Shown: one piece after another, positions 3,681 through 28,129 of the stretch
How positions within the stretch are numbered: position 1 is the first letter of the stretch
How the letters are laid out: each line of letters starts with the position of its first letter
Origin: Octopus sinensis
Taxonomy: Eukaryota
Direction: 5' to 3'
Length of the DNA stretch: 61,337 bases
Assembly: GCF_006345805.1 (NCBI RefSeq)
Contig: NW_021832144.1
Span: 1 to 61,337 of the forward strand
Translations under genes and position numbers: made by a program
The notes under the pieces: generated by a model
Seen by the model: only the letters and a program-made list of their open reading frames with translations
What the model was told of the DNA's origin: nothing
Databases searched by the model: none

Positions 3681-4182
3681 GTTTAGTTTTTTATAGCAGT
3701 GACAATAAATAAACATTTAGAAATTTTATTATCTATTTTATCTAACAAACGAGATCAATTTTATTTGGACTAATGAGAACATTCTTAGGATCTATTTTGA
3801 ATGGCGCTGCAAACATTTTCATTAATTGCAAAATTTCATCAAAATTCTTAAAATGAATAATTTTGAACGTTTTTTAAGTTTAACAATAAGGGACTGGTAA
3901 TCTTAGTATATTTTTAAAATGAATCGTTGACTTTATTTTTGCTCAGATAATTAAAATGAATCGTATCTTTGAACATTATTTGATCTCTCCAAGTTTTAAT
4001 TTTGCTACAAAAGAAGCATAGATCCACAAATTTAATGGGGAAATTATATTTCCCCTGTATTCACAATTTAACAAGGATAAATGAAATTTAGATCTACATT
4101 TAATAAGGTTTCATATTGATAGCAAAAAAGTGTCTATTTTATAAGGAGTTAATAACTTATGCCTATTTTTCACTAGTTTAAA

Positions 4183-7100: not shown

Positions 7101-7759
7101 AATAAGCACACTGTGCAGCATATAGAATATCGGTAATTTGATTAATATCTTGGGGCGGATCATCTTTTGTAATATGATAAATTGCAGAATTTAATCCAGC
7201 CAGGATATCAGTTTTTACCATCCTTCGTTGCACCTTTGAAGTTGGCTTTCGAGAGTCTCTCTGAATAGACTGAACTTTCCCAATTTGGAATTTGAGTTCC
7301 TCTAGGCAATTTCTGAAACTGGAAATTTCTACGTCCACATCATCTTGCACTCTGGAAGAGTCGCATCTCCCTTGCACATTGTTATTCCGTCTAGCCATGC
7401 TCTTTAGTTGGCATAAACTAGAGCACTTTGCCGAGTACTTCTCATTGAACTTCTCCAGGACAAGGTTCCAACCACCTCTTGGCATCCTTCCAAGTCTTTG
7501 CTTCGCGGCAAGGGCAATCTGAGACACCCATTCGCCTTCAGAGACACCATTGACATTTCCGATGATCGCAGAAAGAGAATGCAAGTTAGTTTTGGCAGCA
7601 TCACCAACAAGATCTTCTTTAACACCATTAGCTCTTGTGGCATTGTGAGGTCCCATAGGCGACGGTCCTGTCTTTTTTAAGTTCTTTTTATTTGCAGGAA
7701 GGCCCGTAGGTTTCGTTTTCCTTAACTGCTTGGAAACGTACATGCACACACCACAACAA
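4183..7759 (-). mobile_element. Near-full-length REL-type non-LTR retrotransposon (R4/NeSL-like): N-terminal domain, RT, CCHC finger, restriction-like endonuclease; frameshifted
   Basis: ORFs 6427-7749, 5354-6430 (LRPITCMPTLYK, WVDVKKAFDSV, GILQGDSLSPLLF, FFIDD, YRYLG), 4751-5332 (CVHCKKSRQTVDHLATRC) and 4233-4673, with KPDIFVYD...IEVG upstream. Perfect 12-bp TSD CACTAGTTTAAA at 4171-4182 and 7760-7771; empty site at 20772-20783. Confidence 0.92.
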
Positions 7760-8451
7760 CACTAGTTTAAATATTAAGGACTGATTTTTAAGTGACGTCT
7801 TTAATATATTGAGTTTTTTTTTCTCGACTTTCAAAGATATAAATTATATAAATCTGAGTGCTTCTTATAATGACATTCAATAGTAAAATTTTTCAATAAA
7901 TTAATGATAAAGCTGCTCCTTTACCATACTTTCAACGAAATGAAAAAAACTTTTCTTCCCATTCTATTTGATATTTTCTATTTTCTTGAGACAATGTTCG
8001 ATATTTCTTTGTTGGCCTAAAATATATCTACAAACACGTGTAGTTAAAATATATTAATTTGATATTCAAAATTTATTTAAAAGTTTGGAAATCGTCCGCA
8101 AAAAAGACTCTCGGGGCCGCACTATCCAATGAAATATATTAATCCAGAAATTTTATAATTTCTTCTCTTCTTTTAGAAGGTAAGTCTTTTGCCAAGTCCA
8201 TTTCATTCATTATCTCTATTAAGGCTTTATTCGCTATATATTATTTAAATTACCGTCTTTAGCGTTTTTAACGAAACAATTTTTATCGACCACGAATTTT
8301 ATAACAAATTCGTACCCATTTTCGACCTTTTTTTATCTTCTCCGATTCTACCTTCCTCGCGATTTTGTGACTTCGGATTTAACTACAGTCAACCCACTCT
8401 ATAGTGAACAAAATGTCCACGTTAAAACATCATGTTCACTATTGTCTATAG

Positions 8452-8502
8452 CAGGGGTCACCAAACTTTTTGCACTCGCAGAACGTAGTTTGGTGATGTC
8501 TG
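8452..8502. mobile_element. 51-bp minimal hAT element
   Basis: Imperfect 15-bp TIRs CAGGGGTCACCAAAC / GTTTGGTGATGTCTG, flanked by a perfect 8-bp TSD GTCTATAG (8444-8451, 8503-8510). Confidence 0.8.
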
Positions 8503-8544
8503 GTCTATAGTGAACACACATTTAACACATTTTATTGACCAAAG

Positions 8545-8784
8545 GACCAGGGTAAGCCAGTTAATTATAATCCCCCGTGATCCCCCGAATCAAGCGAGGG
8601 AGATCCTTCTGAAAGGTTCAATCCTGCTCACAATGATTGGACAGAGACGACGATGTCCCAGGGCCAGAGATCTAGAAGTCCTTTTTCGGTAGGCATTAAG
8701 TGCCTCCTGAGCGTTGCCATATCCAAATGGAATTTTCCAACTGACATGGTGGACCCCATAACGCCACGCTAAATCCGGAAGCAC
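8545..8784 (-). mobile_element. LINE 3' fragment, same family as 61131-61337
   Basis: Shares long blocks with the window end (GAGGGAGATCCTTCTGAAAGGTTCAATCCT; GGCATTAAGTGCCTCCTGAGCGTTGCCATATCC); minus ORF FGYGNAQEALNAYRKRT...RIEPFRRISL. Confidence 0.7.
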
Positions 8785-8855
8785 TCAGATTTATATAATT
8801 TATATCTTTGAAAGTCGAGAAAAAAAACTCAATATATTAAAGACTTCACTTAAAA
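8778..8855 (-). repeat. ~78-bp inverted copy of 7786-7864
   Basis: GAAGCACTCAGATTTATATAATTTATATCTTTGAAAGTCGAG...AGACTTCACTTAAAA is the reverse complement of 7786-7864 with one substitution and one homopolymer indel. Confidence 0.85.
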
Positions 8856-8903
8856 CAAAAAAAAGAAAAAGGAATCAATATAACAATAAAGAATATTAAA
8901 GTA

Positions 8904-10694
8904 TGTCACAGTCCGAATAAAATACACGCCGAATAATTACATTCTTTAATTTTACTGAAATTAAAATTTACACAACAAAATGTTTAATTATTATTAAAAA
9001 TATGATTTTTAATGTAAAATTCATTAACCTTTTTTACTAATTTATATAAACAAAACCAACCACACTCAATTTACGCAGTTAACTTATACGTTTGAATATT
9101 GTTATTCCATTTTAGGTTATCCTAATAAAATTTTCATATAAAATTTATCGTTAATTTAAATAAAAAATTATTTTTATTATGGATTTATGAAAATTAATCA
9201 ATTTTAGCTAATCGAGAAATATGAATTCCGTGTAACCGCTCACCGTCCTCCTTTTCGATAACATAGAGATCATTTCTTCGCTCGACAACAATATACTTAT
9301 TAACATCAAGTCCATCGTACAGCGGATACTGCCGAACATTGGCATCGTTGTCCTGTCTAAAAATTAATTTGACGCTTGAGACCTTAAAAGCACAGTCGTT
9401 CCGACATTGATATTTTCTTCGTCGTATCTCCATTTTCTTTTTCAATCATTTTTTCGCCAGCAATAATTAAGTTTTCTAATGCACTTTCTCGTGCCTCTGA
9501 TAATCCAGTTGAATCATAGGCTAAAAGTTGCTCCATTCCCCCTTCATCAATCCTTCCAGGATTTTCAACACCCATGAATATATAAAAAGGGATTTTTTTG
9601 TCGAAGAATGAATGCTGTTATTGTAATCATACACGATGTCCTTTATGCATTCGCGATATCGTCCAAAACAATTTTGAGAAGAACTTGCCGACGATATCCA
9701 GCGTTTTATGCTTTGATTAAATCTACAAATCGATTTTAAATCATTAACCTTTCGACTTGCCCTTGTACCCAAGGAGCACGAGGCCTCCCACGTACATGTT
9801 TTACCATATTTCGTACATAGAGCATCCATTTGCGAATTGCAAAATTCCCTTCCATTATCAGTGTGTAGAATAAGCGGAGGCCCGACATAATAAAAAATTC
9901 TTTGGAATAAATCTGCGATTTCTTCAGAAGATTTGGTCACCGACAGTTCAAGCATTACATATTTGGAAAAGAATCCACAAATACCAAAATCTATTTATTA
10001 ACATTAAATTCATACCCAGCTAAAGCCATCATTCAACGCCGAATATCTTCTGAGGTCAATTAAATCCGCAATGTATCTGTCCCTACATCTCCTTGCAATG
10101 ATTGGCGTAATCGGAGGCTTCGTAGACAATAATTTTTTCGACTAGAATATTTACTAAAAGGAGTTATTACCTGACAGAAAGCACAATTCGAAATCACCTT
10201 AGAGATTTCTTCTCTATTCAATCCATAATAGAGATTTCTTAATTTCGAAAAAAGCCGGTCTCTCCCAAAGTGGTTATAGTTATGTTCCGCCTAAATTTTA
10301 TTTATTAAGTTGGACCTCAACGCACTTAAGCTTTAATTCGATTTCATCTTCACAGAAAAAACGCAATTTAAGCCCATTTTTTCGAAAATATGTTTTTCCA
10401 TTTTCAAAATGGAAATTCTTTCCCAATTTTGTGAGCCTGTATCGCTCATGCCGCTCGATTGACGATGTATCAAAGTTGGAGTCTTTCATTTCTTTGATTT
10501 TGTCCAGTGTTTCCTTAAATAATCTCACTACACGCATGTTTCACGCTTTTTTAAATAAAAAATAATAATGTGATTCTACTAAAATAAATAATCAATTATT
10601 GATTTTTTTCATACTAATTTTTAGATTTCTAATTTTTTCAGCCATTTGTGACAAGTGTAGATTATTCGGCGTGTATTTTATTCGGACTGTCACA
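8904..10694 (-). mobile_element. Ginger-like (integrase-type DDE) DNA transposon with intron-containing, frameshifted transposase
   Basis: 34-bp TIRs TGTCACAGTCCGAATAAAATACACGCCGAATAAT (one mismatch) with TGT...ACA ends; H2C2-like NHFGRDRLF...CAFCQ; catalytic-like ADLID, LHTDNGREF, QGQVER; introns at 10142-10170, 9991-10015 and 9723-9748. Confidence 0.85.
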
Positions 10695-10737
10695 TATTAT
10701 TCAAATTTATTAATAAGTTTTCGCGTCGAATGACTAT

Positions 10738-11290
10738 ATGGATTTCATTTTATGTTTCACTTGTCTAATTCTGACAACGAGTGTAATTGACTATCAGAAA
10801 ACTTTCCAACTGGATTGTGCCAACTTTAACTTCAAACTGAACTATAATCAGGGCTGTTTAATCCTGCAATCTGCCAGTTCTCGTTATGAAGATATTGTCT
10901 TGAACACCCGACTCAGTCCCCTACAAGAGCACAGTGCACCCAAACATGAGCAAAGTATATATTTGGTGGATTAATTCATAAGGGAGCCTATAGCAAGGAA
11001 TTGGTTTATACGCCAGACGATATCAAGGAGATTGTTCAATATGCGGCCTTAAGGGGGATTAGGGTCATCCCTCAGTTTAATTTGTTTGGTAAAAGTCTCA
11101 CTAATATAACAGATGATCTATTTCCGTTGCGCAAAAATACCTGACATAGTATTATCCAACGGAATTATGAACTATCGAATAATAAAAATCCACCACTTTC
11201 TTATTGAAATTAATAGACGAGTTAGAACAACTATTTCCAGACGAATATTTTACGTGAAAATGCCAAAATTCCCGTACCTAATTTTTTTCA
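10738..11290 (+). pseudogene. Beta-hexosaminidase (GH20, HEXA/HEXB-like) fragment
   Basis: GCLILQSASSRYEDIV (N-terminal domain-like), KGAYSKELVYTPDDIKEIVQYAALRGIRVIPQFN (cf. HEXB GSYS..[26 protein letters not shown]) and LIDELEQLFPDEYF; large internal deletions, no catalytic HxGGDE. Confidence 0.75.
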
Positions 11291-11569
11291 TTTCATTGAC
11301 AGAATGTTTGTTTTAAAAAGTCACTTTTAAAGCAAATAAATAAACCGCAAAATTATATATGATCCAACCCCTACTTCGGTGATGACCCTCACGAGCCTTT
11401 GAGATATTATTATGACGGGGACCGTAATCAGGACATTTTTCTTATTGTTTCAGTCTGACACGATGATCTAAAAGGAGAAAAATCAGAATCAACCGGTAAA
11501 TTTAACGGGGAATCAGGACGTTTTGTACAGAGTTCAAATAAAATAATTTTGAAAAATCTAAAAAGACTA

Positions 11570-13483
11570 CAGTTTACCCTCTATTGCTCGCCAATTCTAT
11601 TGCTCGCCATTTCTATAACTCGCCACTTTTTTGGAAAAAATGCCATTTTTACTAAGGAAATTCCATTGCTCGCCAAATTCTCTCACTCGCCACGTTCTAG
11701 TATTAAAAAATTAAAATTTATTATTAAAAAATAATTTTTTCAAATATTTATACCGCGTGTTTTTTTTGTAACATGAGGAAGTGCTCAAGATTATCTTATG
11801 ATCAAAAAAGAGAAATTATAAATTATCTTATTGATAATTCTTCTCTAAGTCTAAGGCACGCCTTAGAGAAATTTTTTCGTCGCGTTTCAAAAAATCAATT
11901 TCGAGACATGCAATTAACGATCTTAAATTGAACAAACAGAAGATTCTTGGAATTAATCCAATTTATGGGAGAAGTTCTCGTTTTTCGAAACTTAGATATT
12001 CAGCAATTGATTCTGAAATCATTGCCTGGATAGATTACATGGAATCTATTGGAGTTTGCCTCAATGATGAGATAATTTTGTCGAAAGCAACTGAAATTGC
12101 TGCGTTAAACGGTCTCTTCGAATTTAAAGCCAGTATAGGATGGCTTGAAAAGTTCAAAAAAAGGCACAATGTAAAACTAAGAATTTTTCATGGTGAATTG
12201 GGATATACTGTGGATGAGTTCAAAGACCAAATCGAAGACTTTAAAAAAATTATCTCTTCTAAAATAAATGAATATGGTTCAGAAAATGTTTATAATGCCG
12301 ACGAAACCGGCGTATTTTACAAGACCATTCCATCAAAAAGTGTCTGCAGGAAACGCCGATCAGGACAAAAATTACTTAAAGATAGGTTTAACATTTTAGC
12401 CAATTTTCAGATTTTCATTAATGCTTTGCGCAAATATGACTGGATCCGATAAAAGAACCCCTTTGATGATCGGGCAGTTTAAGAAACCAAGGTGTTTTAA
12501 AAACTTGAACGTTGATGAATATTTACAATACCGGAATTCTTCAAAGGCTTGGATGAACATGGAAATATTTAACGAATGGTTGTATAATTGGAACAAGACT
12601 CTCAAACAAAAACAAAAAAAGATACTTTTGGTTGTAGACCATTGTCCTTCGCATAGAACAACAATCGAATTAAGTATGATAGAGTTTTATATTTACCAAA
12701 AAACACGACTACTGTGGATCAAGGAATCATTTGATCATTCAAATCTCATTTCAACAAATTTAAATTTAAACATATAATTGAACAAATAAACTACGGTGAC
12801 GCAACTATTGAATGCTATAAAAAATTAACCCTGAAAGATGCAGTCTTATTTCTTATCTAGCCTGGAAAGATGTGTCAGTGGATACAATATCAAAATGTTT
12901 TCAGCACGCCAAATGGGAAAACAGAATTGAAGAACCTATTATGGGAGACCATAAAATAAAAAATTTCGAACAAATTATAGAAAAATTAATGATCACAGAT
13001 CCCATAAAAGAGGAGGAGTTTATAGATTTTACGTACTCTGAAAATGACGAACTTCATGAATTTGTTCAAAACAATAACTATGAAAATAACGATGAAAATG
13101 CAATTTTAGACAGTTCAATTACTGAAGATTGTGAAAGAAACAACTGTATTACACATCGAGATGCGATAAAATGTATTTCGGACCTCAAAAATATTTTTCA
13201 CATGACGATAATTTTGATGTGAATATGCTAGAAAGTTTATTAAAAATGCAAAAAAATATAGAGAAAAGATCATACAAAAAAACTATAAATGATTACTTTA
13301 CTTAAAATTTTGGTTTTTAAATAAATGTTTCGGCTATTTATTTAAATGTTTAGATAGTTAAAAATTATAGAAATTTTTTGTTAATAGAAAATAGGATATT
13401 GATTATTTCTCTTACTCGCCAAATTCTCTTAGTCGCCAATTTTGGCTTGGTCCCAAAAATGGCGAGCAATAGAGGGAAGACTG
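11570..13483 (+). mobile_element. Tigger/pogo DNA transposon, defective transposase (11773-13305)
   Basis: 24-bp TIRs CAGT(TTA/CTT)CCCTCTATTGCTCGCCA, TA on both sides, subterminal CTCGCCA repeats; CENP-B-type HTH (FKASIGWLEKFKKRH), YNADETG, VVDHCPSH, DQGII; frameshifts. Confidence 0.92.
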
Positions 13484-13795
13484 TATTTGTACGGCTTCAG
13501 AGACATCATCCCAAAGCATTTTTTGTACAACTATTGCAAATTATCATAAATGCGTTAATCTGCGTTTCACACTCCAGAGTCTCGAGAGACAGTCGGTATG
13601 TAAAATTGATTCTTTGATAAAAACACATGCGAAAACACTTTAATTATGGTTTCTGGTGAATGATTATGAACAAAGAGGAAAATTATACGAAATGCAAAAA
13701 ATTTTAAAAAATTAACAAACTAATCATTCCCAAAAATCACCGATTACATGATTAAAATCTCTATATAATTTTTGTAATTATACTTTGTGATTAAA

Positions 13796-13806
13796 GGACT
13801 GTGACA
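13796..13806 (-). mobile_element. Isolated Ginger-type terminus (reverse complement TGTCACAGTCC)
   Basis: 11/11 match to the first 11 nt of the left TIR at 8904; followed by TAATA (13807-13811). Also present in the inverted copy at 21907-21917. Confidence 0.6.
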
Positions 13807-14333
13807 TAATATTATTGGAAATTGTCACAAATTGAAAATTTGACAATTAAATAGGTAAGTGTCAAGAAAAGAAAAACGTACAATGCAAACCAGGCAGTAG
13901 GAAAAAATGGCTCAAACTTGTCACTCCGTCAGTTTAAAGCAATCTTTATTCAGTTGTACAAAAAACGAAATAGGAGACTTGTGTGTTCAATTAGAAAGAG
14001 ACTAATAGCGTTGAGACTATAAAAGCCCATTGTGGAAAATCAAATCAGAAAGAACTTAGCCATTGAGGAGGCTTCCAATTTTCCCGGAAAAGGCGTTCTG
14101 CGTCCCTCAATGTTGCATAAGGATCTCTTGATTTGTGAGAAATAACATCGTTATTAGGAGGAGTATTCTCAGATGTCACTTTGAGAAATTGTGAAACGGG
14201 CTGCTTAATATTGCACAGTCTACACAGTGATCGACCCCTCTTCCCCACATGGAGGGTTGTTGTGTGAGTTCGTTAGACGTATTGTGTGGATAAATCAATA
14301 GTCATTTAAATGACATGACTTGTACACACACAA

Positions 14334-15540
14334 ATGACCTCTAATGACAAATACCAACAATTCAAGTCTCGGAATCTCTGGTCCGAGAATGTAAAGAAGA
14401 ATTCATTTTTGGACAGAGAATTGGACTGTACAAGTTCATTAAGAATATTGGAAAGGGAAACTTTTCGAAAGTGAAACTGGCACAGCACGCGCTCACCAAC
14501 AGTAAGTCCCCCGACAACACGTAGGCCCCGTGGCCGTGAAAATAATATTAAAACGAAAACAAAAAGAGGAAGAATTGGAGTTTTTGAGGAAGGAAATCCA
14601 GATTTTGGAGGACCTGAGTCACCCGAACATTTTGAGTCTATTTGAAGTAACGTGAGTGCTCTCCGTAGGTAATCGAGACGACGGATAAACTGCACATGAT
14701 AATGGAATATGCCCCGAACGGAGACCTGGACGGACTAATCAGGAGGTCGGGGGGTTTGGGGGAGGGTGGATGTTTGGCCTACTTCCGACAAGTAGTGGGC
14801 GCAGTGGAGTATGTGGTGAGGACTGTGAAGTAAAATGGCAGCACTCTCGGGAGTATGCTCACAGAGACATCAAAGCAGAAAATATACTTTTCGGAGACAA
14901 TGTCCTCAAACTGGCCGACTTTGGGTTTGCCACTAAATACAGCTCGGACTGTCTCCTCACTGTCCCCTGCGGCACTCTCGCTTATTCCGCCCCCGAGTTG
15001 GTCATGAAACTACCATATGACGGATTCAAAGTTGATGTGTGGGCGTTGGGAGTGCTCCTCTACTATATGATTAGTGGGACCTTCATCTTCCCCGAGGACA
15101 CTGCAATTGTCAGAGCGGCCTCCCTACACATTCACTCCAAAATCTCTGACACGTGCAAACAAGTCCTCTCCGCACTCCTTCAACCCGACCCACACACCAG
15201 ACCGGAGGTCGATCGAATATGCCAGTTTGAGTGGATAGAATGGCAGACTCCTCGCCATTCCCATCAGAAAAAGTTACTTTATCCTGCCTTCGACCGTCCT
15301 TCAGTCACAGAGACAGAACTCCGGGCCAAAGACATGCTCAACGACCTGGGAATTGACAATGAGGTCATTTTTAGGAATAAAATGAACACTCGCGGATCGG
15401 TCGCAGGCACTTTCCGCATTTTGCTTCACAATTTAAAGAATAGGCCCAACAGGAAACCGTCCATCAAATTTATTTCCTCTAAAAAATTTAATTTCCGAAA
15501 ACCTTCTAAAAACCGATCTCGTTTTTGCAGCATTATATAA
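14334..15540 (+). CDS. NIM1K: NIM1K-like Ser/Thr kinase (AMPK-related family), copy 1; compensating 1-nt indels in exon 1 relative to copy 2
   Basis: [15 protein letters not shown] and APE motifs; the N-terminus (copy-2 frame) [27 protein letters not shown] resembles NIM1K EITLGKRIGFYR..IGSGNFSQVKL; three introns of 23, 22 and 26 nt. Confidence 0.75.
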
Positions 15541-15588
15541 TATAATTTTATTTGCAATACATTCTTGATTTTAATAGAGGAAAATGTC

Positions 15589-15830
15589 TTAATGTCCTTG
15601 TGTTGATCGCGATCTCTGTCGGTCATTGGAGTCGACGACATAGATGAGTCCCTTAAGTGACGCACGTAGACTACCTGGGACCCCTCGTAGAAATGACTCC
15701 ACAGACTGCAGATGTTGACCTGTCCACCAATGTCGAGGACAGTGAAGGTGATGTTCTTGTAATCCACAGTCTCCACGTTGAAGCTTGCCTACCGGAATCA
15801 CTGTGCAAATAGAGGATGTACCGACCAAGA
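15589..15830 (-). pseudogene. ARF-family GTPase fragment
   Basis: [36 protein letters not shown]|[13 protein letters not shown] resembles the ARF1 switch region; no P-loop or NKxD found. Confidence 0.7.
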
Positions 15831-16148
15831 AGAAAATTAATTAATTAATACTTACTTTAAGTTCTTATTCAAAGTTCGTTGATAACAGTCGAATTGTGAA
15901 GTCCATCAGCACTTTTTGGTTATCTCTATCTAAGTAATTTTTTAGCTTTATCATAAAATTCAGTTGAATTAGAAATTGAAATTCGATCACTATTTTTAGT
16001 ATACTAAGTTGTTATCTATTGGATGAAAAACTCTTTTAAATCGTTAAAAGGAATAAATATATGTAAGTTTATTTCATGTAAGCCAAAATACAAAATTTTA
16101 GAACACTAACTTATTTCAAAAAGTCAAATAATTAATGACAGTCTATAG

Positions 16149-18841
16149 CAGAGGTTTCCAAGCTTTTTTTTACGCGCCTCCCTTAGAGAAAAAGTACAAT
16201 CTTGCGCCTCCCTTTATATTCCATAATATAATACAATTATTATTTTATCAAAAACAATTTTTTAAAACAAAAAGTGGTACTTTTGTCGAAGTGGTCGCAG
16301 TTTTTTTAGAAGATAATTAAAATTAATTAATTTTTTTAGTGAAAAATAGATTATTTAATTTATAACCCTCTATCAATAATTTAAATGGTTATTAAAATTA
16401 TTTAAAAATTTATTTAACCAATTTAGTCATTTTTAGTACGCGGCATCCAAATTCCAGGACTGTAGAAGGAATTTATGTCTTTTACAATCTGTGCAAAAGA
16501 TTCCTTATAGTTCTGTATTTGTTTTCGCCACATAAATTCTGAAAAAATAACTAACTAAAAAAACCTGCGAAATAAGATCCCAGATGATGTCTTACAGCTC
16601 CTCTTTGAGCTTTATTCTTGCATTTTGCACTTCCCCACATTCGTTCTACTGTCTGGGTGTGCACTCCCGTCGTTGGATCCAAAAAAAAAAAAATGCACTG
16701 CATCCTCCTTACTTATTGGGAGCTGTCGGAATTTGATGTTGCATAAGTCCACAACAGAATTTTCCATGTGACCTATAGTGCCAGTTTATATCAATATTAG
16801 GTACATGCTCGCCATAATATTAAAAAAATTAGAAAATAAATTAGTAAAAAATTTAATAATATTTTAAATTATTGATAGAGCGACTTAAATAAAATATAAT
16901 ATATTCCACCTCAAAAATTATTAGATTTTTTAAAAGGCCTAAAAAAACTGCGACCACTTCGACAAAAGTACCCAAAAAGTTAATGAGATAATTTTTCAAC
17001 CAAAAAGAAATTAGCGGTTCTCTCTCAAATTTTTGTTTCAATAATGTATCGCATGACAATTCTATCAATTTTTCTTTTTCAAAAGTTGTCAATGCAAATT
17101 GATTATCTTCTTCATCAATAAATGGATTCTGTATCCATTCGAACATTTTACAGTCGAGATCTTTAAAATAGTGAGCAAAATGCTTCAACAAACAATCCAA
17201 ATGTTCAGCAAATATGTCTTTGTTTGCTTCAATGTTCACTATGGCGCAAAAGGTGTTTAAAAGTGGAAACATGTCATAGATATTTTTTTGTATATTTGAT
17301 TTCCATAATACCAATTTTTCATAAATGCTTTTATTTTGTCCTTTTGAGAGAATAAATGTAGTTGTGGTCCCTGCATTGATTTATTCAATATACTCAATTT
17401 CCCAAAAATGTCAACTAAATAGGCAAATTTGACAATAAAGTCATCATCCTGAACAACTTTGCATCTTCAATATCATTTTCATCAAGAAAATCTGCAACTT
17501 TGATTTTGAGTTCAAACACCCTTCTAATCACTTTTGCACGAGATAGCCAGCGTACCTCACAATAGTATAAAAGCGATGTATATTTTGAATCCATATCTTC
17601 ACACAGCTTTGCAAAAAGCTTAGCTCTTAAAGGACTGTGTTTTATGTAGTTTATAACTTTTGTAATTTGCGCAAAAATATCGTTCAGTTCTGGACTCATA
17701 TTCTTTGAGACAAGTGCTGATCTGTGCAGCATGCAGTGCGTCCAGATAATTTCTGGTGCTCTGTTTTTTACAAGAGCTTGAAGACCAGATTTATTTCCTG
17801 ACATTGACTGTGCTCCGTCTGTACAAAGTCCAACACAATTGATCCATTCTATGTTATTTTTCTTCAAAAAAAGTATCAATTATATTAAAAATTTCATTGG
17901 CCGTGCTCCTTCCAGGAAATGGTTTGCAGAATAATAGATCTTCTATTATTGTACTTTCTTCAGCATATCTGACATATGCAATTAAATGTGCATTTTTATT
18001 TATGTCAGCTCCCTCATCAACTTGTATAGCAAATTTACAGTTACGTAGTCGAGAAACCAACTGATCACAAAGATCTTCAGATATGTCATCAATTCTTCTA
18101 GCGACTGTGTTATCAGCAAGCGGTATTTGCTGTAATTGTTTTGCATAGGATTCGCCAAACATTGCTTCAACCATATCGATAGCTGCTGGCAAAACTAGAG
18201 TTTCTCCGATATTGTGCGGTTTCTTGCATTTTGCAATCCTGTAAGAAACTTTGTACGATGCTAGTAAAGCATTTGAAGAGACAGAAACAAGTTTTTTTTA
18301 ACGATTTCGTTTGGTTATCAAACTCTTCTAATTTTCTTTTAAAAAATTCTTCAGACTTATGGACATGTTCAGAATGCATCGTTTCAAAATGTCTTCTTAA
18401 TTTGCATGGCCTCATACTATCTGCTGCAAGTGTTTTGAGGCAAAGCAAACAGAGGGGTTTTTCCATAGAATCAACAAAGATACGTGTGAATCCTAACAAT
18501 AAGTAAGATGGAAAGTATTTTCTTGTCTTTGGAGTGGTATTGATTATATTCCAATCATTTTGATTTTTTGAACCATCGTCAAAATCTTTATTATTCGTGA
18601 ATTTTCTTTTGCAACCACTCAAGAATTTATTCATGTGTTAAAATATTTAATTGTCTAATAAATTAAATAAATTTTTGAAAAAATATAATTTTAAATTAAT
18701 AACTCTTATTATCGGAATATAGTCACGTTTTTTACATAGATATAATTTTCTAAAAAATGTTTCTGAAATACTTTTCGCGCCTCCCTTGACACGAGTCAAC
18801 GCCTCCCTAGGGAGGCGCGCCTCCCCATTTGGAAACCTCTG
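16149..18841 (-). mobile_element. hAT transposon, Buster/ZBED5-like, frameshifted and 3'-deleted transposase; lies at the duplication junction
   Basis: 13-bp TIRs CAGAGGTTTCCAA / TTGGAAACCTCTG, subterminal GCGCCTCCC repeats; ORFs KPLCLLC..MRPCKLRRHFETMH, FAIQVDE, CTDGAQSM, HCMLHR, CEVRWLSR; flanks GTCTATAG and GCTTAGAG do not match. Confidence 0.9.
16276..16972 (-). mobile_element. Merlin (IS1016/ISXO2-like) deletion derivative nested in the hAT
   Basis: Perfect 34-bp TIRs GGTACTTTTGTCGAAGTGGTCGCAGTTTTTTTAG; 8-bp TSD CAAAAAGT (16268-16275, 16973-16980); residual DPTTGVHTQTVERMWGSAK transposase motif. Confidence 0.88.
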
Positions 18842-19750
18842 GCTTAGAGCATATGTTTCGTAGCCTGACCGATAGGTAGATTTTCGATAAGAGTGCCCAT
18901 CATTTTTCAGAACATCCATCAATTGCTGATAATTGATCAATTTAAAAGCTTTTGACATATTGATTCCGTAAATGTTTTTTTGCATTTTTGAACGCTTGAA
19001 TAATGGAACATCGTTATCTATGGCTCAAAACAATGTCAAAAGTTAAGCTTCCTTCACGAAACTCGCTATGAAAAGCGGATATAAATGGTTTTGTATGATG
19101 CTTTATTCTTTGTAGAGTAATAATTGCTAGCACTTTCCGCATGCTATTCATAAAAATTACTGCCCTGAAATTGGACAAGGGACCAGTATCCCTCCTTTTA
19201 GGAGCATATGGTTGTTTGTTTTAAACTGTGGTTCGCAATGAGTACTTGTATGTTTTCACTTCCATACTTAAGTAGTTCTGGTTCTAGCCAATCTGGTCCT
19301 GGACTTTTATTATTTTTAAGTTTCCCAACTCCAATTTTTTGAGATGGCCAGTAAATGCTGTAATTCCGTTGCTTTCTGATTTACAAAGTTTCTAAAAGTG
19401 GTCGGCAACTAATTCGGCTGCTTCTGCAGAATCTGCTATTCGTGTCCATTTTCGTATTTTACGACTGGATATTGTCTGTGTTAACGTCCTTGTACTATTC
19501 AGATCATCTTCTCGATATTTGTTCTTTTGCAGCTAAGATTCCCTTTGTTCAGTTTGTTATCCGTATTTAATTAAGACATTTATTGACAAAAAAACCAGGA
19601 TAAACGAGTTAATTATAATCCGCGTATCTCCGATTCACTTTGTAAGCGACAGAGATCCTTTTAAAAAAATTCGATCCTGCCCACGGTGATCGGCCTGGGA
19701 AGAAAATTTCACCGGGTCAGAGTTTTAGAAGTGCTTTTTGGTGAGAAGTA
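18842..19750 (-). mobile_element. Duplicated part of the decayed RTE-like relic
   Basis: Near-identical to about 2272-3170. Confidence 0.65.
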
Positions 19751-19898
19751 GATGCCTCCTTTAATCTAATTATATTGAAATTCTGCTTCTTAACAATATC
19801 AAATGAATGTGATGAACTATCAAATCAGATTTATTAAAAGAAAACATCTTTAAAAGATTTTAAGTCTATTCTATATTGGTAGATTATAGAGATAAAAA

Positions 19899-19970
19899 GC
19901 CCAAGTAGCTCAGTGGGAGAGCGTTAGACTGAAGATCTAAAGGTCGTTGGTTCAATTCCGACCTTGGGCA
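19899..19970 (+). tRNA. tRNA-Phe(GAA), duplicate
   Basis: Identical to 3319-3390. Confidence 0.95.
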
Positions 19971-20039
19971 TAATATTCGTTTTCTTGATTTTTATTTGTT
20001 TTTTAATTTTTTTAGACTAAAAATCATTTAAAAGTAAAA

Positions 20040-20272
20040 AGATAGCTAAGCTAATTAAAGGCCTCACGAGACACCCGGCCAGCCTCGCGAATGGCGAAGC
20101 CGTTCCCTCGGATCACAGCGATCGACAGACGTTCCAGGAGCCAAGAATACTCTCTTGGATCGTGGCTAGTCTTTGAAATCCGTCGACCGAGCGAGCGAAG
20201 GAAGCGGAGTGTCTTGGGGCCGAAGATCCCGGAGGACTCCACGGCAATTGGAGTAAAGAACAGCGAGTTGGA
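20040..20272 (-). mobile_element. CRE-like 3' fragment, duplicate
   Basis: Copy of 3460-3680 that retains 12 nt (GATCCCGGAGGA) missing from copy 1. Confidence 0.8.
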
Positions 20273-21168
20273 GTTTAGTTTTTTATAGCAGTGACAATAA
20301 ATAAACATTTAGAAATTTTATTATCTATTTTATCTAACAAACGAGATCAATTCTATTTGGACTAATGAGGGAACATTCTTAGGATCTATTTTGAATGGCG
20401 CTGCAAACATTTTCATTAATTGCAAAATTTCATCAAAATTCTTAAAATGAATAAATTTTGAACGTTTTTTAAGTTTAACAATAAGGGACTGATAATCTTA
20501 GTATATTTTTAAAATGAATCGTTGACTTTATTTTTGCTCAGATAATTAAAATGAATCGTATCTTTGAACATTATTTGATCTCTCCAAAGTTTTAATTTTG
20601 CTACAAAAGAAGCAATAGATCCACAAATTTAATGGGGAAATTTATATTTCCCCTGTAATTCACAATTTAACAAGGATAAATGAGAATTTAGATCTACATT
20701 TAATAAGGTTTCATATTGATAGCAAAAAAGTGTCTAATTTTATAAGGAGTTAATAACTTATGCCTATTTTTCACTAGTTTAAATATTAAGGACTGATTTT
20801 TAAGTGACGTCTTTAATATATTGAGTTTTTTTTTCTCGACTTTCAAAGATATAAATATATAAATCTGAGTGCTTCTTATAATGACATTCAATAGTAAAAT
20901 TTTTCAATAAATTAATGATAAAGCTGCTCCTTTACCATACTTTCAACGAAACGAAAAAAACTTTTCTTCCCATTCTATTTGATATTCTCTATTTTCTTGA
21001 GACAATGTTCGATATTTCTTTGTTGGCCTAAAATTATCTACAAACACGTGTAGTTAAAATATTTAATTTGATATTCAAAATTTATTTAAAAGTTTGGAAA
21101 TCGTCCGCAAAAAAGACTCTCGGGGCCGCACTATCCAATGAAATATATTAATCCAGAAATCTTATAAT

Positions 21169-21234
21169 CACCCAATGAAAGAAATCCAATGAAACCCAAG
21201 AAATCCAATGAAATATATTAATCCAGAAATCAAG
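21169..21234. other. Templated filler DNA at a rearrangement junction
   Basis: Mosaic of repeated local CCAATGAAA / ATCCAATGAAATATATTAATCCAGAAAT pieces between the forward block and the inverted block. Confidence 0.8.
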
Positions 21235-21380
21235 CAGTTTCACTTTCGAAAAGTTCCCTTTCCAATATTCTTAATGAACTTGTACAGTCCAATTCTCTGT
21301 CCAAAAATGAATTCTTTCTTTACATTCTCGGACCAGAGATTCCGAGACTTGAATTGTTGGTATTTGTCATTAGAGGTCAT
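21235..21380 (-). pseudogene. Inverted, truncated NIM1K exon-1 stub
   Basis: Reverse complement of 14334-14479; breaks just after the G-loop. Confidence 0.85.
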
Positions 21381-22232
21381 TTGTGTGTGTACAAGTCATG
21401 TCATTTAAATGACTATTGATTTATCCACACAATACGTCTAACGAACTCACAAACAACCCTCCATGTGGGGAAGAGGGGTCGATCACTGTGTAGACTGTGC
21501 AATATTAAGCAGCCCGTTTCACAATTTCTCAAAGTGACATCTGAGAATACTACCTCCTCCTAATAACGATGTTATTTCTCACAATCAAGAGATCCTTATG
21601 CAACATTGAGGGACGCAGAACGCCTTTTCCGGGAAAATTGGAAGCCTCCTCAATGGCTAAGTTCTTTCTGATTTGATTTTCCACAATGGGCTTTTATAGT
21701 CTCAACGCTATTAGTCTCTTTCTAATTGAACACACAAGTCTCCTATTTCGTTTTTGTACAACTGAATAAAGATTGCTTTAAACTGACGGAGTGACAATTT
21801 GAGCCATTTTTTCCTACTGCCTGGTTTGCATTGTACGTTTTTCTTTTCTTGACACTTACCTATTTAATTGTCAAATTTCAATTTGTGACAATTTCCAATA
21901 ATATTATGTCACAGTCCTTTAATCACAAAGTATAATTACAAAAATTATATAGAGATTTTAATCATGTAATCGGTGATTTTTGGGAATGATTAGTTTGTTA
22001 ATTTTTTAAAATTTTTTGCATTTCGTATAATTTTCCTCTTTGTTCATAATCTTCATTCACCAGAAACCATAATTAAAGTGTTTTCGCATGTGTTTTTATC
22101 AAAGAATCAATTTTACATACCGACTGTCTCTCGAGACTCTGGAGTGTGAAACGCAGATTAACGCATTTATGATAATTTGCAATAGTTGTACAAAAAATGC
22201 TTTGGGATGATGTCTCTGAAGCCGTACAAATA

Positions 22233-24147
22233 CAGTCTTCCCTCTATTGCTCGCCATTTTTGGGACCAAGCCAAAATTGCGCTACTAAGAAATTTGGCGA
22301 GTAAGAGAAATAATCAATATCCTATTTTCTATTAAAAAAATTTCTATAATTTTTAACTATCTAAACATTTAAATAAATAGCCGAAACATTTATTTAAAAA
22401 ACCAAAATTTTAAGTAAAGTAATCATTTATAGTTTTTTTGTATGATCTTTTCTCTATATTTTTTTGCATTTTTAATAAACTTTCTAGCATATTCACATCA
22501 AAATTATCGTCATGTGAAAAATATTTTTTGAGGTCCGAAATACATTTTATCGCATCTCGATGTGTAATACAGTTTTTTCTTTCACAATCTTCAGTAATTG
22601 AACTGTCTAAAATTGCATTTTCATCGTTATTTTCATAGTTATTGTTTTGAACAAATTCATGAAGTTCGTCATTTTCAGAGTACGTAAAGTCTATAAACTC
22701 CTCCTCTTTTATGGGATCTGTGATCATTAATTTTTCTATAATTTGTTCGAAATTTTTTATTTTATGGTCTCCCATAATAGGTTCTTCAATTCTGTTTTCC
22801 CATTTGGCGTGCTGAAAACATTTTGATATTGTATCCACTGACACATCTTTCCAGGCTAGATAAGAAAATAAGACTGCATCTTTCAGGGTTAATTTTTTAT
22901 AGCATTCAATAGTTGCGTCACCGTAGTTTATTTGTTCAATTATATGTTAAATTTAAATTTGTTGAAATGAGATTTGAATGATCAAATGATTCCTTGATCC
23001 ACAGTAGTCGTGTTTTTTGGTAAATATAAAACTTCTATCATACTTAATTCGATTGTTGTTCTATGCGAAGGACAATGGTCTACAACCAAAAGTATCTTTT
23101 TTTGTTTTTGTTTGAGAGTCTTGTTCCAATTATACAACCATTCGTTAAATATTTCCATGTTCATCCAAGCCTTTGAAGAATTCCGGTATTGTAAATATTC
23201 ATCAACGTTCAAGTTTTTAAAACACCTTGGTTTCTTAAACTGCCCGATCATCAAAGGGGTTCTTTTATCGGATCCAGTCATATTTGCGCAAAGCATTAAT
23301 GAAAATCTGAAAATTGGCTAAAAATGTTAAACCTATCTTTAAGTAATTTTTGTCCTGATCGGCGTTTCCTGCAGACACTTTTTGATGGAATGGTCTTGTA
23401 AAATACGCCGGTTTCGTCGGCATTATAAACATTTTCTGAACCATATTCATTTATTTTAGAAGAGATAATTTTTTTAAAGTCTTCGATTTGGTCTTTGAAC
23501 TCATCCACAGTATATCCCAATTCACCATGAAAAATTCTTAGTTTTACATTGTGCCTTTTTTGAACTTTTCAAGCCATCCTATACTGGCTTTAAATTCGAA
23601 GAGACCGTTTAACGCAGCAATTTCAGTTGCTTTCGACAAAATTATCTCATCATTGAGGCAAACTCCAATAGATTCCATGTAATCTATCCAGGCAATGATT
23701 TCAGAATCAATTGCTGAATATCTAAGTTTCGAAAAACGAGAACTTCTCCCATAAATTGGATTAATTCCAAGAATCTTCTGTTTGTTCAATTTAAGATCGT
23801 TAATTGCATGTCTCGAAATTGATTTTTTGAAACGCGACGAAAAAATTTCTCTAAGGCGTGCCTTAGACTTAGAGAAGAATTATCAATAAGATAATTTATA
23901 ATTTCTCTTTTTTGATCATAAGATAATCTTGAGCACTTCCTCATGTTACAAAAAAACACGCGGTATAAATATTTGAAAAAATTATTTTTTTAATAATAAA
24001 TTTTAATTTTTTAATACTAGAACGTGGCGAGTGAGAGAATTTGGCGAGCAATGGAATTTCCTTAGTAAAAATGGCATTTTTTCCAAAAAAGTGGCGAGTT
24101 ATAGAAATGGCGAGCAATAGAATTGGCGAGCAATAGAGGGTAAACTG
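22233..24147 (-). mobile_element. Tigger/pogo transposon, inverted duplicate
   Basis: Reverse complement of 11570-13483 with the same TIRs and TA flanks; a few substitutions and indels. Confidence 0.92.
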
Positions 24148-24429
24148 TAGTCTTTTTAGATTTTTCAAAATTATTTTTATTTGAACTCTGTACAAAACGT
24201 CCTGATTCCCCGTTAAATTTACCGGTTGATTCTGATTTTTCTCCTTTTAGATCATCGTGTCAGACTGAAACAATAAGAAAAATGTCCTGATTACGGTCCC
24301 CGTCATAATAATATCTCAAAGGCTCGTGAGGGTCATCACCGAAGTAGGGGTTGGATCATATATAATTTTGCGGTTTATTCTATTTGCTTTAAAAGTGACT
24401 TTTTAAAACAAACATTCTGTCAATGAAAT

Positions 24430-24981
24430 GAAAAAAATTAGGTACGGGAATTTTGGCATTTTCACGTAAAAATATTCGTCTGGAAATAGTTGTTCTAACT
24501 CGTCTATTAATTTCAATAAGAAAGTGGTGGATTTATTTATTCGATAGTTCATAATTCCGTTGGATAATACTATGTCAGGTATTTTTTGCGCAACGGAAAT
24601 AGATCATCTGTTATATTAGTGAGACTTTTACCAAACAAATTAAACTGAGGGATGACCTAATCCCCCTTAAGGCCGCATATTGAACAATCTCCTTGATATC
24701 GTCTGGCGTATAAACCAATTCCTTGCTATAGGCTCCCTTATGAATTAATCCACCAAATATATACTTTGCTCATGTTTGGGTGCACTGTGCTCTTGTAGGG
24801 GACTGAGTCGGGTGTTCAAGACAATATCTTCATAACGAGAACTGGCAGATTGCAGGATTAAACAGCCCTGATTATAGTTCAGTTTGAAGTTAAAGTTGGC
24901 ACAATCCAGTTGGAAAGTTTTCTGATAGTCAATTACACTCGTTGTCAGAATTAGACAAGTGAAACATAAAATGAAATCCAT
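24430..24981 (-). pseudogene. Beta-hexosaminidase fragment, inverted duplicate
   Basis: Reverse complement of 10738-11290. Confidence 0.75.
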
Positions 24982-25022
24982 ATAGTCATTCGACGCGAAA
25001 ACTTATTAATAAATTTGAATAA

Positions 25023-26072
25023 AACATCCCTGCCTGTGCGCTGGGGTGGCCTTGGCTTGAGATCCTATTCCGATCTTGCCCTCCCGGCATTCCTATCCGC
25101 TCATCACGCTTCTCGTACTCTCTCAGACATCGTTCTTAGAAACCTCCCCGAACGGAAATTGTCTGAAGTTTACTCTGCAGCCCGTGGTCGGTGGGAGGCT
25201 CGGTTGGTTCGAAGCTGCCCAACTCTCAATCTGTACAGCGCCAATGGGACGAAATCTCTTGTCAGGCAATCTTCGAAGGCCTGCTTCCTGTCTCCAATCA
25301 ACACCGTGTCGCTTGCCTCCGTGCAGGTCGCTGTGAAAGCAGCGGTGTCTGGTTAAAGGCTCTCCCTCTCCCTTCCATCGGGAACCTGTTGGACAAGGAA
25401 TGCCTAAGAATTGCAATCTCCCTCCGTGTCGGGCTGAAAATCTGCCAGTCGCACAAATGCCGTTGTGGGGAACTGTTGACGAGTACGGTTTGCATCCCCT
25501 CGCTTGCCGGCGGAGTGCCGGTCGTGCCCCCCGTCACAGTGAACTCAACTCAGTCGTACAGAGAGCCCTCGCCTCAGCAGGCATCCCGTCTATCCTTGAA
25601 CCTGTTGGATTGGATAGAGGGGATGGCAAACGCCCTGACGGCATGTCCACCTTCCCCTACGAGCAGGGGAAATCCCTTATTTGGGATTCTACCTGCTCGG
25701 ACACGTTCTCGCTGGGAAATCTCGCGCTGTCCGCCGCCAATCCTGGGCACGCTTCCAGGCAGGCCGAGGAGCGAAAGATTCTCAAGTACGGCCACCTGTC
25801 CAACTCGCTGCTCTTTACTCCAATTGCCTTGGAGTCCTCCGGGATCTTCGGTCCCAAGACACTCCGCTTCCTTCGCTCGCTCGGTCGACGGATTTCAAGG
25901 ACTAGTCACGATCCAAGAGAGTTTTCTTGGCTCCTGGAACGTCTGTCGATTGCTGTGATCCGAGGGGAACGTCTTCGCCATTCGCGCGGCTGGTCGGGTG
26001 TCTCGTGAGGCCTTTAACTAACTTAGCTATCTGTAATTTTTGTCTTGTTTGTATAAATTAAATTTATGTGAC

Positions 26073-26098
<26 letters not shown>
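25023..26098 (+). mobile_element. 5'-truncated CRE-like REL non-LTR retrotransposon with poly(A) tail
   Basis: LPVRWGGLGLR, WLKALP...LRIAISLRVG, CxC..H.L.C finger, RHSELN, KRPDG, WDSTC, FTPIALES, RLSIAVIRG; 26-A tail at 26073-26098; about 12-bp TSD AAATTTGAATAA (25011-25022, 26096-26107); GC-rich. Confidence 0.9.
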
Positions 26099-26103
<5 letters not shown>

Positions 26104-26631
26104 ATAATATTATTGGAAATTGTCACAATTGAAAATTTGACAATTAAATAGGTAAGTGTCAAGAAAAGAAAAACGTACAATGCAAACCAGGCAGTAGGAA
26201 AAAATGGCTCAAACTTGTCACTCCGTCAGTTTAAAGCAATCTTTATTCAGTTGTACAAAAAACGAAATAGGAGACTTGTGTGTTCAATTAGAAAGAGACT
26301 AATAGCGTTGAGACTATAAAAGCCCATTGTGGAAAATCAAATCAGAGAAGAACTTAGCCATTGAGGAGGCTTCCAATTTTCCCGGAAAAGGCGTTCTGCG
26401 TCCATCAATGTTGCATAAGGATCTCTTGATTTGTGAGAAATAACATCGTTATTAGGAGGAGTATTCTCAGATGTCACTTTGAGAAATTGTGAAACGGGCT
26501 GCTTAATATTGCACAGTCTACACAGTGATCGACCCCTCTTCCCCACATGGAGGGTTGTTGTGTGAGTTCGTTAGACGTATTGTGTGGATAAATCAATAGT
26601 CATTTAAATGACATGACTTGTACACACACAA

Positions 26632-27839
26632 ATGACCTCTAATGACAAATACCAACAATTCAAGTCTCGGAATCTCTGGTCCGAGAATGTAAAGAAAGAA
26701 TTCATTTTTGGACAGAGAATTGGACTGTACAAGTTCATTAAGAATATTGGAAAGGGAAACTTTTCGAAAGTGAAACTGGCACAGCACGCGCTCACCAACA
26801 GTAAGTCCCCCGACAACACGTAGGCCCCGTGGCCGTGAAAATAATATTAAAACGAAAACAAAAAGAGGAAGAATTGGAGTTTTTGAGGAAGGAAATCCAG
26901 ATTTTGGAGGACCTGAGTCACCCGAACATTTTGAGTCTATTTGAAGTAACGTGAGTGCTCTCCGTAGGTAATCGAGACGACGGATAAACTGCACATGATA
27001 ATGGAATATGCCCCGAACGGAGACCTGGACGGACTAATCAGGAGGTCGGGGGGTTTGGGGGAGGGTGGATGTTTGGCCTACTTCCGACAAGTAGTGGGCG
27101 CAGTGGAGTATGTGGTGAGGACTGTGAAGTAAAATGGCAGCACTCTCGGGAGTATGCTCACAGAGACATCAAAGCAGAAAATATACTTTTCGGAGACAAT
27201 GTCCTCAAACTGGCCGACTTTGGGTTTGCCACTAAATACAGCTCGGACTGTCTCCTCACTGTCCCCTGCGGCACTCTCGCTTATTCCGCCCCCGAGTTGG
27301 TCATGAAACTACCATATGACGGATTCAAAGTTGATGTGTGGGCGTTGGGAGTGCTCCTCTACTATATGATTAGTGGGACCTTCATCTTCCCCGAGGACAC
27401 TGCAATTGTCAGAGCGGCCTCCCTACACATTCATTCCAAAATCTCTGACACGTGCAAACAAGTCCTCTCCGCACTCCTTCAACCCGACCCACACACCAGA
27501 CCGGAGGTCGATCGAATATGCCAGTTTGAGTGGATAGAATGGCAGACTCCTCGCCATTCCCATCAGAAAAAGTTACTTTATCCTGCCTTCGACCGTCCTT
27601 CAGTCACAGAGACAGAACTCCGGGCCAAAGACATGCTCAACGACCTGGGAATTGACAATGAGGTCATTTTTAGGAATAAAATGAACACTCGCGGATCGGT
27701 CGCAGGCACTTTCCGCATTTTGCTTCACAATTTAAAGAATAGGCCCAACAGGAAACCGTCCATCAAATTTATTTCCTCTAAAAAATTTAATTTCCGAAAA
27801 CCTTCTAAAAACCGATCTCGTTTTTGCAGCATTATATAA
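26632..27839 (+). CDS. NIM1K: NIM1K-like kinase, copy 2, intact 378 aa after splicing
   Basis: Exons 26632-26800, 26824-26945, 26968-27114 and 27141-27839 join in frame (1137 nt); kinase motifs G-loop, VAVK, HRD, DFG and APE present. Confidence 0.82.
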
Positions 27840-27887
27840 TATAATTTTATTTGCAATACATTCTTGATTTTAATAGAGGAAAATGTC

Positions 27888-28129
27888 TTAATGTCCTTGT
27901 GTTGATCGCGATCTCTGTCGGTCATTGGAGTCGACGACATAGATGAGTCCCTTAAGTGACGCACGTAGACTACCTGGGACCCCTCGTAGAAATGACTCCA
28001 CAGACTGCAGATGTTGACCTGTCCACCAATGTCGAGGACAGTGAAGGTGATGTTCTTGTAATCCACAGTCTCCACGTTGAAGCTTGCCTACCGGAATCAC
28101 TGTGCAAATAGAGGATGTACCGACCAAGA
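27888..28129 (-). pseudogene. ARF-family fragment, duplicate
   Basis: Copy of 15589-15830. Confidence 0.7.

Follow-up and report, generated by a model that had tools for sequence, protein, structure and literature searches.

A Buster-Type hAT Element at the Junction of a Putative Tandem Duplication in Octopus sinensis

The window analysed here is the entire contig VCDQ01013302.1 (61,337 bp) of the Octopus sinensis assembly GCA_006345805.1, and all positions are given in window coordinates. It carries a Buster-type hAT transposon located exactly at the junction between two tandem copies of one segment, which will be referred to as copy A (left) and copy B (right), and flanked by two different 8-bp target sites. 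A second contig of the same assembly, VCDQ01000240.1 (109,897 bp), which will be referred to as L, contains the segment once and lacks the hAT; 34.5 kb of this contig (L001 and L002) were compared with the window. The explanation that we tentatively place first, while giving it somewhat less than an even chance, is a heterozygous tandem duplication on one O. sinensis haplotype, in which the two ends of one non-autonomous Buster-type hAT generated both breakpoints via hybrid-element insertion. On this explanation, the octopus duplication is a natural example of an already known way in which transposons duplicate DNA.

Geometry of the Duplication Junction

Self-alignment of the window matched positions 13802-16149 to 26101-28448 (99.7%) and 2270-4182 to 18840-20783 (98.1%), and homology between copies A and B stopped 1-2 bp from the hAT termini. 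The original prediction, which had placed the element exactly at the junction of a tandem duplication, was thus borne out, as the homology ends at the termini of the inverted repeats. The 8-mers GTCTATAG and GCTTAGAG flank the hAT on the left and on the right, respectively, and the proposal that each corresponds to an empty site elsewhere in the window was confirmed by exact matches at the outer borders of the duplication. GCTTAGAG occurs twice in the window, at 18842-18849 and at 2272-2279 (site 1). GTCTATAG is found again at 28440-28447 (site 2), where neither a hAT nor a footprint nor a second GTCTATAG at 28448 was detected and where the sequence is that of L. A pattern search of the window for the hAT inverted repeat gave matches at 16149 and 18841 only. 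Furthermore, no hAT was found at either outer edge of the duplication (2272 or 28447), and no further copies of the junction hAT were present in the window or in the examined part of L.

As the two flanks are unlike each other, the junction hAT is without a target-site duplication. The absence of a matched 8-bp duplication shows that the hAT was not placed by plain insertion, and the same unmatched flanks rule out a plain insertion into an already existing duplication junction. The two flanks represent two separate genomic target sites, and therefore the ends of the hAT set both breakpoints of the duplication. TcBuster is reported to generate 8-bp target duplications with the consensus nnnTAnnn (PMC3499496). 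The expectation that both flanks of the octopus element fit this pattern held, with TA at positions 4-5 of each 8-mer. Given a TA dinucleotide frequency of 0.08 in the window, the chance of finding a TA centre in both flanks is approximately 0.006.

Three Versions of the Segment in One Assembly

L is collinear with window positions 552-50939. It contains GCTTAGAG and GTCTATAG once each, 10,080 bp apart and in an immediate context equal to that of the empty sites of the window. The single copy, with each 8-mer occurring once, is thus the simplest ancestral state, and the hAT flanks are ordinary genomic sites. Sequence identity between the window and L is a mosaic in which kilobase blocks with zero mismatches alternate with blocks of 5-8% divergence, which argues for two alleles and not for an old paralogue. 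A WDR35-like protein (window 40143-40925) is recorded on exactly two contigs in the whole collection, VCDQ01013302.1 and VCDQ01000240.1, and this fits two haplotigs of one locus. Both observations make an old paralogue unlikely as the source of L. A shortcut path through the same reads was rejected as well, since 26 substitutions over 1.9 kb separate L from both copies, and the flanks diverge by up to 6%.

Over the initial 1.9 kb of the segment, copies A and B agree with each other against L at 26 substitutions and 5 indels, whereas zero sites were found at which A and L agree against B. The 10 sites at which B and L agree against A are clustered with indels private to A. Variants not shared with L also surround the empty site 1 (2272-2279) within 60 bp on both sides, indicating that one non-L molecule has site 1 empty while another non-L stretch carries the right end of the hAT. 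In addition, the three versions show mutually exclusive structural states: A carries a non-long-terminal-repeat (non-LTR) retrotransposon (long interspersed nuclear element, LINE), B has the corresponding site empty, and L contains another insert, of 1.6 kb. The surroundings of a further stretch with pogo/Tigger-like transposase frames (segment T) likewise occur in three arrangements, one each in A, B and L. If one diploid animal was sequenced, three versions of the segment in a diploid assembly imply that two of them are located on one haplotype.

Proposed Mechanism of the Duplication

A hybrid element is formed from two transposon ends drawn from sister chromatids or homologues (PMC2775673); such elements are known from Drosophila P and from sister-chromatid events of Ac. 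Applied to the octopus locus, the hAT would first have occupied one site, for example site 2 (target GTCTATAG), on a chromosome whose homologue was without the hAT. After replication, transposase supplied in trans would have brought together ends from both sister copies, the left end from one and the right end from its counterpart, and the paired ends would have integrated at the other site (GCTTAGAG), approximately 8.5-10 kb away, on the homologue. Such an event would yield the arrangement X-A-[hAT]-B-Y with both outer sites untouched, and as reciprocal product the deletion X-[hAT]-Y. Changes that were acquired later or that existed before would then have differentiated the two copies, namely a LINE in each, together with an inversion bounded by a transposon in A and an inverted patch resembling a repair product in B.

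The window contains a single element at the junction, its swapped flanks are each valid targets, and the outer borders are pristine; clean outer borders are predicted by an insertion into a homologue without the hAT. Hybrid insertion into the rejoined sister chromatid was considered and rejected, as it would have left GTCTATAG twice together with a footprint at the right copy end, neither of which was seen. We infer that both junctions belong to one physical hAT and that they arose by a hybrid-element event rather than by homologous exchange, with one of the two sites, for example site 2, occupied first.

Alternative Explanations

The strongest competitor, which we consider somewhat less likely, is a real duplication made by unequal (non-allelic) homologous crossover. 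One homologue would have carried the defective hAT at site 2, its partner an independently inserted copy of this hAT at site 1, and the exchange would have taken place within the 2.7-kb element. Such an exchange predicts the same final sequence, with one junction copy, swapped 8-mers and clean outer sites, and both flanks do resemble genuine integration targets. Two nearby insertions of the same family are plausible, as hAT elements tend to reinsert close by, a behaviour established for Ac. Moreover, copy A contains an inversion with swapped target duplications in the same window, the classical mark of an exchange between element copies (PMC2775673). However, this route needs two independent insertions of one truncated element, 10 kb apart and in trans, followed by a rare exchange, and neither site is represented by an allele with a matched target duplication, the only other allele seen having neither insertion. 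The reported frequencies also differ, with 0.5-1% for aberrant transposition in the presence of active transposase compared to 1e-4 to 1e-6 for non-allelic exchange (PMC3744419). We therefore prefer the transposition route, which requires one insertion instead of two in trans and has the higher reported rate.

Less probable still, in our judgement, is an assembly artefact in which two real hAT junctions, derived from separate hAT copies of two haplotypes or of two loci, were collapsed into a false tandem. Several features of the data are compatible with this. The window is a whole contig of 61 kb with a high index number, in an assembly of 13,516 scaffolds with 14% of the bases unplaced and 5.2% duplicated BUSCO genes (PMC10700109), statistics that also fit retained haplotigs. 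The consensus within the window is noisy, a 2.7-kb repeat is a typical mis-join point, and copy B contains odd structures such as an inverted patch with a 66-bp filler. On the other hand, A, B and L differ by single-nucleotide polymorphisms as well as by mutually exclusive insertions, so that a diploid must hold the segment twice on one haplotype. The hAT ends also stand in the left-right order and orientation proper to a single element, and chimeric reads would not have their breaks at the exact terminal bases beside TA-centred 8-mers. A mis-join of two haplotypes through the repeat had been named as the scenario that would overturn the duplication; it is made less probable by the third, structurally distinct and hAT-free haplotig in the same assembly. 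Exact-protein look-ups in public assemblies with two open reading frames (ORFs), one crossing the right junction and one internal to the hAT, gave no match; as even a conserved gene of the locus is on record for the two NCBI contigs only, this result carries no weight.

Several points weigh against a duplication by hybrid-element insertion. The linkage of 16148 to 18842 through one hAT on a single molecule is an assumption, as is the single sequenced animal on which the argument from three versions depends. The contig is small, apparently unplaced and noisy, with 42 of the 50 small indels between A and B comprising 1 bp. At least 4 structural changes accompany at most 0.22% substitutions between A and B, an odd ratio that could reflect assembly trouble. 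The hybrid-element and trans-crossover routes yield an identical final sequence and are not separable here. Finally, to our knowledge, hybrid-element insertion has not been shown for any Buster element.

Two further routes, reversed-ends transposition and same-chromosome exchange between hAT copies, would both have required that outer copies were lost afterwards and are very improbable, although each has been documented in maize as a source of tandem duplications bounded by hATs (PMC3744419). After reversed-ends transposition of Ac and dhAT, every repeat begins with a transposon, and the outer transposon is accompanied by a matched 8-bp duplication; exchange within one chromosome results in three copies (PMC3744419). 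In the window, we found one copy and no other matching inverted repeat, instead of two elements with their ends, a transposon heading each repeat and an outer matched duplication, and the outer sites equal those of a never-occupied allele with no excision footprint. Same-chromosome exchange was dismissed because the outer hAT copies are absent. From the two origins named in the original prediction, unequal crossover thus remains viable, whereas the signature of reversed-end transposition is missing from a window with a single copy and pristine outer sites.

Comparison with Known Systems and Significance

The closest known geometry is that of the flanking duplications made by P-element hybrid-element insertion in Drosophila, reportedly described in 1996 by Gray, Tanaka & Sved and by Preston, Sved & Engels; within the hAT superfamily, it is the reversed-ends duplication of Ac/dhAT. 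As in the Drosophila P system, adjacent DNA is directly duplicated with a single element kept precisely between the copies, one flank corresponds to the old insertion site and the other to a new nearby target, the homologue serves as target, the outer borders are untouched, and a reciprocal deletion is expected. In contrast to the P-element recombinants, the octopus case involves a Buster-type hAT in a cephalopod, the allele is natural and its history is deduced from sequence, and the reciprocal product was not observed. With maize Ac/dhAT, the octopus locus shares the superfamily, duplication endpoints that coincide with transposon termini, kilobase sizes and a junction element without a matched 8-bp duplication. 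The maize events, however, start from two elements with reversed ends and leave a transposon per repeat, whereas the octopus window shows one element and empty outer edges. A further parallel is found in the Galileo inversions of Drosophila buzzatii, in which target duplications are exchanged between the breakpoints and the unrearranged allele has each of them once (PMC2775673). Galileo differs in having an element at both breakpoints and demonstrable chimeric copies (PMC2775673), whereas the octopus element is a single copy.

The gene-level outcome of the duplication is small, as it adds one tRNA-Phe and doubles a kinase that is no longer functional by all appearances. Both the NIM1-like protein model and the copy number of the locus in the O. 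sinensis annotation are not to be trusted as they stand. Most demonstrated cases of tandem duplication by transposons come from maize and fly stocks that had been engineered or screened, and we know of few natural examples with both the duplicated and the untouched allele in hand. Since both alleles are present in one public assembly, the octopus case is directly checkable with existing reads. If the duplication is genuine, the ends of a Buster-type hAT have recently reshaped an octopus genome, and the locus would provide a concrete case for weighing aberrant transposition against homologous exchange. A wider proposal, which we rate as rather doubtful, is that a Buster-type hAT was recently mobilised and, by inserting into the homologue as a hybrid element, gave rise to a tandem duplication that is now segregating. 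On this proposal, the inversion with swapped 7-bp target duplications and the templated inverted patch would make the 10-kb segment a small hotspot at which structural change is driven repeatedly by transposon ends. Apart from Drosophila P and maize Ac, it would represent the first natural hybrid-element case, and the Buster family would gain its first example.

The hAT Element and Its Relatives

The junction element (Table 1) carries subterminal GCGCCTCCC motifs at both ends. Transposase remnants were detected on the minus strand from 18634 to approximately 16976 in four reading-frame pieces. Compared with ZBED5/FAM200-like proteins of 620-625 amino acids, the conceptual transposase covers residues 1-550 with 68% identity to the best matches; in one of these (P0121), the identity is 68% over residues 1-550 of 624, and the counterpart of its last 74 amino acids is absent from the hAT. 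A homologue search with the conceptual transposase yielded 968 matches at E<=1e-30. The named homologues are ZBED5-like, SCAN domain-containing 3-like and FAM200A-like proteins, with the domains PF14291, PF27073 (FAM200-ZBED5 RNase-like) and PF27046; they come from fleas, spiders and caddisflies, and no mollusc protein is found among the named top matches. The conceptual transposase itself had no match in a local Pfam scan, and hence the domain and family assignment rests on the homologues. ZBED5, SCAND3 and FAM200 are domesticated genes derived from Buster elements. Judged by transposase homology, inverted ends and target preference, the junction element is assigned to the Buster branch of the hAT superfamily. 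It shares with the Buster family, as represented by TcBuster, the homology of the transposase, short inverted ends with CAG as their first bases and a central TA in the 8-bp target sites, but differs from intact Buster elements in lacking the C-terminal 74 residues and in having a nested insertion and broken frames.

The nested element of 697 bp is flanked by an 8-bp target duplication, CAAAAAGT, at 16268-16275 and 16973-16980. Once it is removed, the hAT reading frame meets a stop. By eye, its middle contains a fragment resembling an IS1595/Merlin-type transposase; Pfam gave no match on a 41-aa stretch. Some of the four frame changes in the hAT transposase lie at homopolymer runs, for example at 18283-18290 and 17866, and may be consensus errors. 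The missing 74 residues, the nested insertion and the broken frames together indicate that the hAT cannot move unaided, and on this sequence basis we class it as non-autonomous. The region absent from the junction copy includes the C-terminal hAT dimerisation region, which bears on autonomy and not on family origin.

The closest full-length relatives (63-68% identity) have intact 620-aa frames and nearly identical termini and were found on short soil-metagenome contigs (L004-L007; JGI 3300031718 and ENA ERZ27256860). These elements end in CAG[TC]GGTTTCCAAAC, and TA is present at positions 4-5 in three out of four flanks. L006, the sole relative with both ends on one contig, has flanks that are TA-centred yet unmatched, and this is possibly a chimera of short-read assembly. 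Neither the window nor the examined stretch of VCDQ01000240.1 nor the metagenome relatives yielded a member of this hAT lineage flanked by a matched 8-bp duplication. Two more hAT-type transposase remnants are located on the plus strand near the right end of the window, at 57489-58796 and 59466-61036. By extrapolation, VCDQ01000240.1 ends less than about 100 bp from the same point as the window, and both contigs may break at one repeat.

Structure of Copies A and B

The original prediction held that everything between the two empty sites, approximately 14 kb, is duplicated around the element. This was not supported: copy A spans 13.9 kb and copy B 9.6 kb, and they have approximately 8.5 kb in common in four aligned blocks, 3.8 kb of which are in opposite orientation (Table 1). 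Positions 4183-7759 and 8160-10696 are private to copy A, and positions 25023-26100 to copy B. The aligned parts differ by at most 19 substitutions in 8.5 kb (at most 0.22%) and by 50 small indels; approximately half of these indels lie in homopolymer runs, and as a class they look like long-read consensus noise.

Table 1: Features of the window. Shared blocks are given as positions in copy B followed by the corresponding positions in copy A.
Feature	Position	Strand	Remarks
Unoccupied site 1, GCTTAGAG	2272-2279	+	Outer left border of copy A; ...TTCAATG precedes
Copy A of the segment	2272-16148	+	13,877 bp
tRNA-Phe(GAA), copy A	3319-3390	+	
Non-LTR retrotransposon (LINE), A only	4183-7759	-	RVT_1 Pfam match
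1.79-kb element, A only	8905-10693		33-bp inverted ends GTCACAGTCCGAATAAAATACACGCCGAATAAT; integrase-like fragment; at inversion breakpoint
Segment T	10694-13786	+	Pogo/Tigger-like transposase frames; HTH_Tnp_Tc5 and DDE_1 Pfam matches
NIM1-like kinase, copy A	14333-15540	+	Intronless, frame-broken
Left flank 8-mer, GTCTATAG	16141-16148	+	End of copy A, site 2
Buster-type hAT	16149-18841	-	Deletion derivative, 2,693 bp
Left terminal inverted repeat, CAGAGGTTTCCAA	16149-16161	+	13 bp, perfect
Nested element	16276-16972		697 bp, inside the hAT; inverted ends of ~35 bp
Right terminal inverted repeat	18829-18841	-	13 bp, perfect
Right flank 8-mer, GCTTAGAG	18842-18849	+	Start of copy B, site 1
Copy B of the segment	18842-28447	+	9,606 bp, rearranged internally
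Shared block 1	18842-20783 = 2272-4182		Direct
tRNA-Phe(GAA), copy B	19899-19970	+	Identical to the A copy
Shared block 2	20772-21168 = 7760-8159		Direct
Inverted patch, B only	21169-21926	-	66-bp filler, then reverse complement of A 13787-14479; extra inverted kinase 5' region
Shared block 3	21235-25022 = 14479-10697		Reverse complement
5'-truncated non-LTR retrotransposon (LINE), B only	25023-26100	+	Poly-A tail; target duplication TGAATAA
Shared block 4	26101-28447 = 13802-16148		Direct
NIM1-like kinase, copy B	26632-27839	+	Matches Gnomon model P0001; counterpart in L at L001 10001-11208
Unoccupied site 2, GTCTATAG	28440-28447	+	Outer right border of copy B; CCAAAGAA directly after

The LINE in copy A is bordered by a 12-bp target duplication, CACTAGTTTAAA, at 4171-4182 and 7760-7771, and the matching site in B is empty. 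Segment T is flipped in copy A compared to both VCDQ01000240.1 and copy B. In copy A, it is bounded on the left by the 1.79-kb element and on the right by a 19-bp remnant (13787-13805) bearing the tip of this element. The 7-mers AAAGTAT/ATACTTT and ATATTAT/ATAATAT are present in inverted form at both breakpoints in A (window 8898-13812), and each is single in VCDQ01000240.1 (L001 6340-9500). Such swapped 7-mers are the classical mark of an inversion, made by two inverted element copies or by aberrant transposition.

Copy B retains the ancestral junction between T and the kinase, broken only by the truncated LINE. On the far side of T, it additionally carries the derived A-type junction (A 13787-14479) as a reverse complement, joined by the 66-bp filler. 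In this way, 678 bp of A (13802-14479) occur twice in B in opposite orientations, creating an inverted repeat around T. The 66-bp filler was copied from nearby sequence, and 745 bp were lost there. The patch looks like the result of break repair templated from an A-type copy; a missed-adapter palindrome was excluded as its origin, as the sequences flanking the filler lack reverse complementarity to each other.

Within 2272-28447, at least four structural differences were counted between A and B and three or four in comparison to VCDQ01000240.1. The adjoining 22 kb (28448-50939) differ from VCDQ01000240.1 by a single 200-bp indel. Copy A also contains a miniature element of 51 bp at 8452-8502 (window 8444-8510 including its flanks), the ends of which (CAGGGGTCACCAAACT) resemble those of the junction hAT; it is also present in VCDQ01000240.1. 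Its perfect 8-bp target duplication is GTCTATAG, the left-flank 8-mer of the junction hAT, and this reuse could be a coincidence or reflect a favoured target motif.

Gene Content of the Segment

The transposon had been credited with duplicating tRNA-Phe and NIM1K. The tRNA-Phe gene is indeed present twice in identical form, whereas "NIM1K" overstates an intronless, frame-broken copy. The kinase aligns collinearly with NIM1 kinases, and across the N-lobe its reading frame is broken by at least three changes of frame as well as by in-frame stops. Its ORF at 14770-15540 is 100% identical to part of P0001, an O. sinensis "serine/threonine-protein kinase NIM1-like" model of 334 aa, which bridges the damage by an artificial intron of approximately 200 bp and thereby drops the region from VAIK to the hinge (kinase subdomains). 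The defects are also present in copy B, which shows zero substitutions and zero indels against L over the kinase, and copy A carries an additional break in the 5' region. Taken together, the kinase is most likely a pseudogene as judged from its reading frames, and accordingly the functional effect of the duplication is probably small.

The 3' end of the kinase is overlapped, in opposite orientation, by an ORF (minus strand, 15426-15776 and 27725-28075) of which 38 residues match the Arf GTPase family. It is duplicated together with the kinase, and no gene is called at this locus in L. Outside the segment, a tandem array of 33-bp units (approximately 85% alike) was observed at 55056-55498, within an ORF (54940-55623) that encodes repeats of the DELNMDEYYNS type.

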